A DNA stretch of 64,000 nt from NCBI RefSeq assembly GCF_006345805.1, contig NC_042998.1, forward strand, positions 186,310,001 through 186,374,000, given 5' to 3'. Origin of the DNA: Octopus sinensis. Lineage: Eukaryota. Below, piece after piece: positions 33,311 to 35,673 of the stretch (positions are counted from its first letter, which is position 1; the number at the start of each line of letters is the position of its first letter). The notes under the pieces were generated by a model. It worked only from the letters and a program-made list of their open reading frames with translations, was not told the DNA's origin and ran no database searches. The position numbers and the translations under genes were made by a program.

Positions 33311-35673
33311 ATAATAAAATAATATATAAACATATGCACATATACATACATATATGTAAATACCTACATCTATATGTATATATACATGCATATATGGGTA
33401 CAGGACACCAAAAAAACATTGAACACAATGAGAAACGAAAACATGAAAACAAAAACATAGAAACGGACTTTTTTTCAAACAATGAAAAAACAGAGTACAA
33501 GACATACAACACAAGGAATATTCCCCTTCTTCAGTTGTCCCTGTTTCTGCCATTCCATATATATATATATGATAGGCTTCTTTCAGTTTCTACATACCAA
33601 ATCCACTCACAAGGCTCTGGTTGGCCGACAGCTATAGTAGAAGACATTTACCCAAGGTGCCACACAGTGGGACTGAACCTGCAATTATGTAGTTAGAAAG
33701 CAAGATTCTTACCGCACAGCTACACTTAATAACACTTTATGTACTCCATTCTTTGATGGAACATAAGATGCAGCAAAAATTTTTGCTCTCAATTAAAATG
33801 ATTGGAAACCAGTTAAGATTTTAGAAACCTGATCTCTGACGTTCAAAATAATTGTACCTTATATGTTTTATTTTTGTTTTTATTTTATTATAGATTGTGC
33901 GAAATGACAGAACATTAGAAAGAATAGTTTTTCCGATCCCAGAGATATGTGAATATTTAACAGATGAAACTAAAAACAAAGTCTATTATACTGCAGAGCG
34001 AGATGATCAAGGGAGCAAAGTAGCTGATTTCTTTGAGCGACATGAAGATATGTTTGCTGAAATGAAGTGGCAAAAACAACTTCGTGGTATAGTCTTTGTT
34101 ATTCATTTATATAAATATCACCAGTTAATATGAAATTGTACATTAGTTGAGAGCTGAGATGATGCCACTTCATGCTAAATTACTTATCGGTAAATAAATA
34201 GATGACTTTAGCTGACAGGATGGCCGAGCGCTCTAAGGCACCAGACTCAAGGTGTGTTACCTTAACCAGAATGAAGAGTATTCTAGTCCACGAATGTGGG
34301 CGTGGGTTCAAATTACCAATGTCGCTTCACTGACACCTGTGCCGGTGGCACGTGTAAAAAGATTTGAGCGAGGTCATTGCCAGTACCGCCTGACTGGCTC
34401 CCGTGCCGGTGGCACGTAAAAAGCACCTACTACACTCTCAGAGTGGTTGGCGTTAGGAAGGGCATTCAGCTGTAGAAACTCTGCCAGATCAAGATTGGAG
34501 CCTGGTGCAGCCATCTGGTTCGCCAGCCCTTGGTCAAAATCGTCCAACCCATGCTAGCATGGAAAACAGACGTTAAACGATGATGATGACTGTGTTATTG
34601 CCATTGAAATGTCATGAATATAATAACATCAGTTGATATCAAATTATGTGGATTGGTAGGTGTCTTCAACGCTTGTGTTTCAGTCTGTATGAAATGCAGG
34701 CTATAAGAAATAAAGTCAAAATATAAGAAATATGATAGTGTATGCTAGTGAAACATAAGTGGTTAATATATTGAGGATATACAATGACCCTAGCAGAATG
34801 AACTGCGAATTATCTGCAGGATATTTAATTTTACCTTTAGGGAAACATTATAGTGTAGATCTGTGATTCCCAATTTGGGGCATGGTAATATTTTGGTGAG
34901 GTATGTTGAATTTATACCTTTTGTACACAATGTTTTGTATACCAATGAATTATTAAAAAAAAAATTCTTTACATCCCTTCTGTGGACACAATTTTATCAA
35001 ATTTTGGACACTTTACAGATAACAGGTCGTTTTCATCATATTCATAAGATCTGATGTCACTAAAGAGGGAATAGATTATTTCCTTCAATTTAGTGGTATG
35101 TGAGAACATGTAGGTAATTACAAATGCATGTGTGTGTGCATGTGTGTATGTAGTATAGAACTGGTCAGTACTGAATACAATGCCATCTTAATTCCCTATG
35201 GAGAAATAAACTGTAGACAGACTTATGTGTACAGGTGTGTCTAAAAGTATTGACTCTTTATCTCCAGTGGCGACAAAAATCAGGGTACACAAGAAAAATG
35301 TGGTGCTGCAGAGTGTTGATGGGGCAATAAATGGCGTTGGGGGCTGAGGGATGAAAGAATTGAATGGTGTGGAATGGAAGTAAGGGGTAGTGCCAGTGAA
35401 GGAAGAGAAAGAGGCAAAGAGAGAGACAGACAGATAGAGAGAGAGAGATTTATGGTACAAGTAATGCACGTCGGGCGAAATGCTTAGCGGTATTTCATCT
35501 GCCGTTACGTTGTGAGTTCAAATTCCGCCAAGGTCAACTTTACCTTTCATCCTTTCAGGGTCAATAAATTAAGTACCAGTTATGCACTGGAGTCGATGTA
35601 ATCGACTTAATACCTATGTCTGTCCCCTCTATGTTTAGCCCCTTGTGGGTAATAAAGAAATAGGTACAAGTAA

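Follow-up and report, generated by a model that had tools for sequence, protein, structure and literature searches.

A 64,000-nt stretch of the Octopus sinensis genome (RefSeq assembly GCF_006345805.1, contig NC_042998.1, positions 186,310,001 to 186,374,000 of the forward strand; called the window below) carries at 34201-34591 a unit in which a tRNA-Leu(CAA) copy, its intron still in place, stops in the T loop and runs directly into the 3' end of a long interspersed nuclear element (LINE). A head derived from an RNA polymerase III (Pol III) transcript and a LINE tail make up the layout of a short interspersed nuclear element (SINE). How did the two parts come together in the middle of a tRNA, and is the unit a SINE at its birth? 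A reading made from the window alone (the sequence-only reading) had proposed that the reverse transcriptase (RT) of the LINE switched template onto an unspliced pre-tRNA with its leader, giving a newly born SINE. The chimera itself is present as described, and the template switch holds up as the simplest account of it; we consider it probable that a single retrotransposition event took place in which the RT left the LINE RNA and went on copying at nt 60 of a nuclear pre-tRNA-Leu(CAA). The claim of a new SINE fails. From its sequence, the unit is best called a SINE-like dead end, a single dead copy with the layout of a SINE.

All parts of the unit lie on the + strand. Window positions 34208-34313 comprise the leader (6 nt), nt 1-60 of tRNA-Leu(CAA) and an intron of 29 nt, and LINE homology spans 34313 to 34589. 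The leader ttagct is found at 34208-34213. Exon 1 (tRNA nt 1-37, 34214-34251), delimited by comparison with the intron-bearing loci of the genome and with ARAGORN, contains the 5' strand of the acceptor stem, the D arm with the A-box-like TGGCCGAGCGC (34221-34231) and the anticodon CAA (34248-34250), followed by G37 at 34251. The retained intron (34252-34280) occupies the canonical 37/38 site. Exon 2 (34281-34313) supplies the 3' strand of the anticodon stem, the long variable arm, the 5' strand of the T stem and the T loop ttcaaat as far as T60. The last ~277 nt of an abundant LINE, belonging to its 3' untranslated region (UTR) and 5'-truncated at the junction, follow at 34313-34578 and end in the (GAT)n microsatellite tail (gatgatgatga, 34579-34589); all LINE copies compared end in (GAT)n. 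The heptamer gatgact stands at 34201-34207 and again at 34585-34591 as a putative target-site duplication (TSD).

The tRNA is joined to the LINE with neither filler nor spacer, and the single T at 34313 fits both partners. At the junction the LINE copies read gtgatcg-ttaccaa, the tRNA genes gggttcgaat-cccac and the window gggttcaaat-taccaa. No 3' strand of the T stem, 3' strand of the acceptor stem or trailer of the tRNA was found at the junction or after the LINE tail. Every part of the layout described earlier (an intron-bearing tRNA-Leu(CAA), the cut in the T loop, the spacerless LINE 3' UTR, the (GAT)n end and gatgact on both sides) is thus where the sequence-only reading had placed it.

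A functional tRNA-Leu(CAA) gene has a complete cloverleaf and a terminator; the tRNA of the window stops at nt 60. ARAGORN in its default setting (introns disallowed) reported no tRNA in the window and none at the parent loci, and Rfam gave no match at E<=1 in 33900-34900. Such negative results are expected for the window copy because the fragment is both 3'-truncated and intron-bearing. With introns allowed, ARAGORN reported nothing at the window copy, though it detected the parent genes.

The source genes were searched for by comparing 34195-34314 with the whole genome (a 2.72-Gb assembly in 13,516 contigs). About 54 candidate intron-bearing tRNA-Leu(CAA)-like loci were found, most of them intact genes. 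With introns allowed, ARAGORN gives the parent loci a class II cloverleaf of 86 nt, which has a long variable arm, and introns that are 29-35 nt long. Its label Met(cat) for these loci was rejected as an artefact of an intron placed 2 nt off the canonical 37/38 site, and the class II shape excludes Met; the loci were kept as Leu(CAA) because of that shape and the canonical intron position. Closest to the window copy are three genes on contig C11371, with 93% identity over 104 nt. The window intron is identical to theirs at 27 of 29 positions, whereas the introns of other subfamilies (29-35 nt) are clearly different. Bases -6 to -1 are tcagct in the closest genes (L032/L033) against ttagct in the window (five of six the same), and agct or something near it precedes most genes of the family at -4 to -1. 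The sequence-only reading had asked for a comparison with the intron and leader of the parent Leu-CAA gene; the genome search and ARAGORN supplied close relatives that match in most positions of both. Upstream of -6 the window has no similarity to any gene flank; gene homology stops 4-6 nt ahead of the tRNA, and L038/L082 (described below), a further retrocopy from this gene family, is alike in that respect. The 5' part of the unit thus has the extent of an RNA and carries no gene flank. Since both intron and leader were kept, the template was a nuclear precursor.

The tRNA part differs from the nearest (C11371) genes at 7 of 104 positions (6.7%), and three of the seven differences are CpG transitions. 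They lie at nt 2 (T>A), G19>C, G26>A (a CpG site), G57>A, two positions in the intron and one in the anticodon stem. Twenty-nine of the ~54 other loci were aligned, and all of them keep the stretch 3' of the T loop that the window copy has lost: 27 read tcccac and two tctcac, most of them continuing with ttctgaca. Three further observations concern this gene family. C11371, home of the three closest relatives of the window copy, is an unplaced contig. A tandem array of at least 18 tRNA-Leu(CAA) genes with a 35-nt intron is found at C27:6913555-6923400, with a spacing of ~0.3-1.2 kb. At L041, L048, L060 and L035, full-length copies of the abundant SINE of the genome begin a few bases past the terminator T-run of tRNA-Leu(CAA) genes, which suggests an insertion preference for terminators or Pol III read-through at them.

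When the genome was searched with the whole unit, more than 4391 candidates came up, and the best 40 of them were scored; repeats were compared pairwise and by majority count. These best 40 LINE copies align only to query positions 112/113-389, with 94-96% identity. Past that point the 5' extension of other copies varies from ~10 nt to more than 1.5 kb, therefore the pattern is the 5' truncation of a LINE. At ~1.2 kb before the 3' end, decayed copies encode a reverse transcriptase (RVT_1, E 1e-25) with a PHD finger directly after it, and the last 277 nt of the unit match the 3' ends of this RT-encoding element, a tail in common with a partner LINE as in SINEs. No endonuclease domain was found in the 314 amino acids ahead of the RT in the octopus copies examined. 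Relatives from other organisms (~50% identical) have Exo_endo_phos (an AP-type endonuclease) at residues 13-234, then the RT, then the PHD finger, and members of their 90%-identity clusters reach 1006-1079 amino acids. Neither the names of these homologues nor those of the clusters carry a clade label. The endonuclease/RT/PHD architecture and the (GAT)n end of the LINE are compatible with the RTE clade, and RTE, the name used in the sequence-only reading, is here a candidate assignment. Microsatellite 3' ends are not diagnostic of RTE, since they are also found in other LINE clades, for example CR1/L2. RTE elements with microsatellite ends have been described in Octopus, and such ends are common in RTE (PMC9115989). 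The window tail has six private substitutions in 271 nt, and the median of the other copies is also six; on these counts it is an ordinary member of its LINE subfamily. The 3' UTR of the LINE (window 34330-34430; L002-L030) contains imperfect direct repeats of ~50-60 nt with the motif gtgccggtggcacgt(g)taaaaag, and extra repeat units are present in some copies (e.g., C4:123740017-123740124 beside L020).

The heptamer gatgact brackets exactly the leader, the tRNA and the tail, and not the LINE part alone. When random 25-mers of the window were compared with the tail and flank stretch, a shared 7-mer or longer arose by chance with P~0.035, and five of the seven bases of the 3' copy lie within the (GAT)n tail. 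The repeat is supportive of one event, not strong evidence for it, being only modestly beyond chance; the sequence-only reading had itself called it weak, a caveat that is borne out. Readable TSDs of other copies of the tail LINE are 6-7 bp long and abut the tail (L005, L018, L030), in a survey of 29 copies that was partly informative owing to imprecise 5' ends and many microsatellite flanks. The unit lies in a gene. A PDB sequence search identified 33897-34088 (+ strand) as an exon of the inositol 1,4,5-trisphosphate (IP3) receptor (PDB 7lhe_A residues 2195-2256, E 9e-24), for which Pfam gave no match, and the chimera is found ~120 nt into the intron that follows, on the gene's own strand.

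Fusions of a tRNA precursor to this tail are found elsewhere in the genome. In L077 (G000:C2:2680644-2680900) a complete tRNA-Arg(ACG) with its trailer caaatgcttt is joined to the last ~172 nt of the same LINE tail, and in L078 (G000:C2:99296200-99296315) a 5'-cut tRNA-Arg with trailer is joined to its last 54 nt. The process that fuses pre-tRNA and tail is therefore demonstrably recurrent, with other breakpoints in these two loci. L038/L082, a retrocopy of the tRNA-Leu(CAA) gene family itself, has its 5' limit at -5 and a 15-bp repeat on either side.

The junction of the window was then counted over the genome, as the sequence-only reading had advised. A 33-nt junction pattern with up to three mismatches matches only the window locus in 2.72 Gb. 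A 21-nt version with up to two mismatches matches the window and one other place (L064), and reversed controls gave two to three matches; L064 was rejected as a second junction copy, being an unrelated chance match. Amplification into a SINE family would leave several junction loci, and this genome has one.

The age of the insertion was examined by aligning Logan contigs of four other organism labels (B to E, the window genome being A) to 33700-35100. For B, D and E, individual contigs cross the boundary between the unique left flank and the tRNA part and reach 34270, 34224 and 34270, respectively, with no differences in the latter. On the other side, contigs of B and D pass from the end of the tail (34563 and 34579 onwards) into the unique right flank. 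The insertion is thus present in A, B and D as a minimum, and E has its left side. Organism C is ~5% diverged in the left flank, and its contig fits to ~34200, as estimated from bin depth. Past that point the contig continues for several hundred bases unlike the window, the tRNA part is uncovered, and no C contig covers 34640-34686; this pattern fits the absence of the insertion. The contig joints considered are the deepest ones, all of them from the repeat, and an empty-site joint in C is not visible among them. With no daughter copies and with the locus present under other organism labels, the insertion is neither new nor amplified. The divergence of its two parts, roughly 2-7%, agrees with the SINE/LINE burst reported for O. 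vulgaris at a Jukes-Cantor distance of 0.065 (PMC13282606). At 34113/34114, in the intron ahead of the unit, the contigs of B, D and E have an additional 54 bases that the window assembly lacks, owing to either an indel or a difference in assembly. The contig alignment of organism C also breaks at about this place, fitting to 34103 and again from ~34114.

A sense small RNA is here joined directly to the 3' part of a 5'-truncated LINE. From what was observed (the anatomy, the source gene family, the LINE family, the unique junction and the presence in relatives) we infer a template switch and its point of entry. The LINE endonuclease would have nicked the IP3-receptor intron at gatgact, and target-primed reverse transcription would have started on the (GAU)n end of the LINE RNA and copied its last ~277 nt. 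The RT would then have switched to a primary tRNA-Leu(CAA) transcript in the nucleus, unspliced and with the leader still attached. It may have entered at nt 60, where the T loop is open and single-stranded; alternatively, the precursor may already have been 3'-shortened, with its end at that point. Copying through A58, the intron and the leader would have brought the enzyme to the 5' end of the transcript, and second-strand synthesis would have left the 7-bp TSD. The chimera never amplified and would since have decayed as neutral intronic DNA. Such a single event is supported because leader and intron match those of the genes, homology ends 4-6 nt upstream of the tRNA, L038/L082 is alike in this respect, and the fusions in L077 and L078 were verified.

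Several observations weigh against this account. Entry in the middle of the tRNA is unlike the two tRNA-Arg chimeras, in which the switch is at the 3' end after the trailer. The junction microhomology is only 1 nt. The TSD is short, overlaps the tail and would be met about once in 30 by chance. The empty site was not recovered among the contigs of B to E, that of C ceasing to fit at ~34200 with no resumption on the right flank. Finally, the tRNA part (7/104 against the nearest gene, with three CpG sites) looks somewhat more diverged than the tail (6/271 private). The unequal divergence could reflect two events of different age, or the true source gene may not be among those found.

Two separate events would begin with a tRNA-Leu(CAA) pseudogene or a tailless (3'-truncated) retrocopy; a 5'-truncated LINE would later have inserted in or at the T loop of that copy, with loss of the tRNA sequence 3' of it, or the order may have been the reverse. 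The apparent excess divergence of the tRNA part (6.7% against ~2% private in the tail) and the weakness of the TSD favour such a history. Likewise, 3'-truncated tRNA retrocopies ending in loops are known in other animals (PMC5322556), and a LINE with more than 4391 candidate copies is abundant enough to insert by chance beside anything. We nevertheless judge this history unlikely. It needs two independent hits at the same nucleotide, or an insertion together with an exact deletion, and nothing of the tRNA 3' end is left after the tail. The heptamer gatgact brackets the composite rather than the LINE part alone, the organism C contig that holds the left flank shows neither part, and analogous one-piece chimeras recur in the genome.

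Less probable again, and quite doubtful in our view, is a rearrangement at the DNA level, in which a piece of a tRNA gene or of its cDNA was captured as filler and end-joined to a truncated LINE cDNA with no template switch. The 1-nt microhomology would fit end joining as well, and end-to-end template jumping would not usually produce a break inside the tRNA. A genomic piece, however, would be expected to carry some gene flank beyond -6, and none is seen; a captured tRNA cDNA would give the same product as template switching, and the sequence does not separate these two routes. The template switch in a single event is the account we retain.

The promoter elements bear on whether the unit could ever have acted as a SINE. 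The sequence-only reading had described near-intact A and B boxes. Both motifs are present; the A-box-like motif is recognisable apart from G19>C, and the B box keeps GGTTCAAAT but has C61 and C62 replaced by LINE sequence, leaving a non-tRNA base at position 61, and the 3' strand of the T stem is likewise LINE. No TTTT was found on the + strand between the head and 34829, and a Pol III transcript starting at the head would thus be predicted to include the tail. The head-and-tail layout, the A- and B-box-like motifs, this run without a terminator and the few copies reached by tRNA-Leu(CAA)/tail fusions elsewhere (with a common derived deletion in L083 and L087) might suggest a SINE master, functional or nascent, whose tRNA promoter would drive Pol III transcription and whose LINE tail would allow mobilisation, but we give this hardly any credence in view of a junction that is unique even with 3 mismatches in 33 nt (as a family it is refuted by copy count), a locus found under other organism labels without any daughter copy, and the damage to both boxes and to the whole 3' strand of the T stem. 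What had been called a newly born SINE is therefore a single insertion that occurs in several organisms, with a tRNA part 6.7% diverged and altered A and B boxes.

The fusions elsewhere that did reach more than one copy were found with a pattern made of the tRNA-Leu 3' end, the trailer and ggtgcNNcagcatg, which gave 11 matches and none in the control (L079-L089). Their head is a pre-tRNA-Leu(CAA) that retains leader, intron and T-run trailer, and it meets a retroposon tail of ~50 nt at a single fixed point. Of the two variants of this tail, one is the terminal part of the abundant SINE of the genome. One of the loci is flanked by a 15-bp repeat. Examples are G000:C4:118314097-118314296, C23:20506392-20506567, C2:197403621-197403809 and C13:3382265-3382464. 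Three trailer types occur, therefore several independent fusions took place. In L083 and L087 (91% identity) the anticodon region has the same derived deletion, therefore at least one fusion was copied from one master. To judge from its copies, L079-L089 is a small SINE-like family of at least 11 members that did multiply. Further partial copies are found at C6:57851513, C13:11334610, C1750:3644 and C3:46389297.

Six of the 11 family copies (L079, L081, L084, L086, L088 and L089) begin at (a)tcccacttctgacag, that is, at tRNA nt 59/60-61, just 3' of A58. This start at nt 59/60 is the same spot of the T loop at which the tRNA part of the window ends. An RT stop at m1A58 would explain the 5' ends of the six copies. 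It is conceivable, and we put it forward tentatively, that a habitual process is involved in which LINE RTs of the octopus lineage repeatedly switch to nuclear Pol III primary transcripts (pre-tRNAs with leader, intron and trailer not yet removed), with nt 59/60 of the T loop possibly a preferred point of break or entry next to m1A58. If true, the genome would hold a record of pre-tRNA ends and of the stages of SINE birth, from dead one-offs to the small intron-bearing tRNA-Leu(CAA)/tail family.

Taken by itself, the window chimera is an ordinary dead intronic retrocopy and a by-product of LINE reverse transcription of a known kind. Its value is that of a clean, datable example from a mollusc of the proposed first step of SINE genesis, the switch of a LINE RT to a Pol III transcript. 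What is unusual is that the captured RNA was a nuclear precursor, not yet spliced and with its leader attached, and that entry was at the T loop. The copy and the other chimeras of the genome could be the basis of a genome-wide census of the fusion rate, of the tRNA break points and of what separates amplifiers from non-amplifiers.

Chimeras of small RNAs and LINEs have been described, among them tRNA/L1 chimeras with one TSD around both parts, in which the tRNA pieces are typically truncated (10.1101/2025.02.02.635956), and U6/L1 chimeric retrocopies attributed to template switching (Buzdin et al. 2002, as cited in 10.1101/081950). The window copy resembles both in having the RNA of a Pol III gene at the 5' side, a 5'-truncated LINE at the 3' side and a direct joint, and in that these are mostly single dead copies. 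They have one TSD around the whole; in the window gatgact stands at both ends, with the chance level (P~0.035) and the overlap with the tail given above. The LINE of the window, an invertebrate element with a (GAT)n tail, is not L1. The tRNA of the window is in the sense orientation, whereas the tRNA/L1 cases are mostly antisense halves; its RNA is an unspliced precursor with leader, and the break is in the T loop and not in the anticodon loop. In 3'-truncated retrocopies of tRNAs, processed or not, the break falls in loops and other single-stranded regions (PMC5322556). A break in the middle of the tRNA therefore has precedent, both in these retrocopies and in the truncated tRNA pieces of the L1 chimeras (10.1101/2025.02.02.635956).

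Tailless retropseudogenes (Schmitz et al. 2004; PMC5322556) are target-primed directly and have no LINE tail; the tRNA of the window continues into 277 nt of LINE. L077 and L078, which have the same LINE tail, and L079-L089, which derive from the same tRNA gene family, are like the window copy in retaining features of the precursor. They differ from it in being joined at the 3' end of the transcript after the trailer, and the window copy is joined within the T loop. Among SINEs, the head of PittSINE was gained by template switching (10.1101/081950), and chimeras of RTE-type LINEs with tRNA or 5S sequences have given rise to SINEs (Kojima 2018, as cited in 10.1101/2025.02.02.635956). Those chimeras gained transcriptional activity and amplified, and the window has a single copy without the 3' third of the tRNA; they agree with it in architecture, in the proposed switch of the RT to a tRNA and in being flanked by TSDs.

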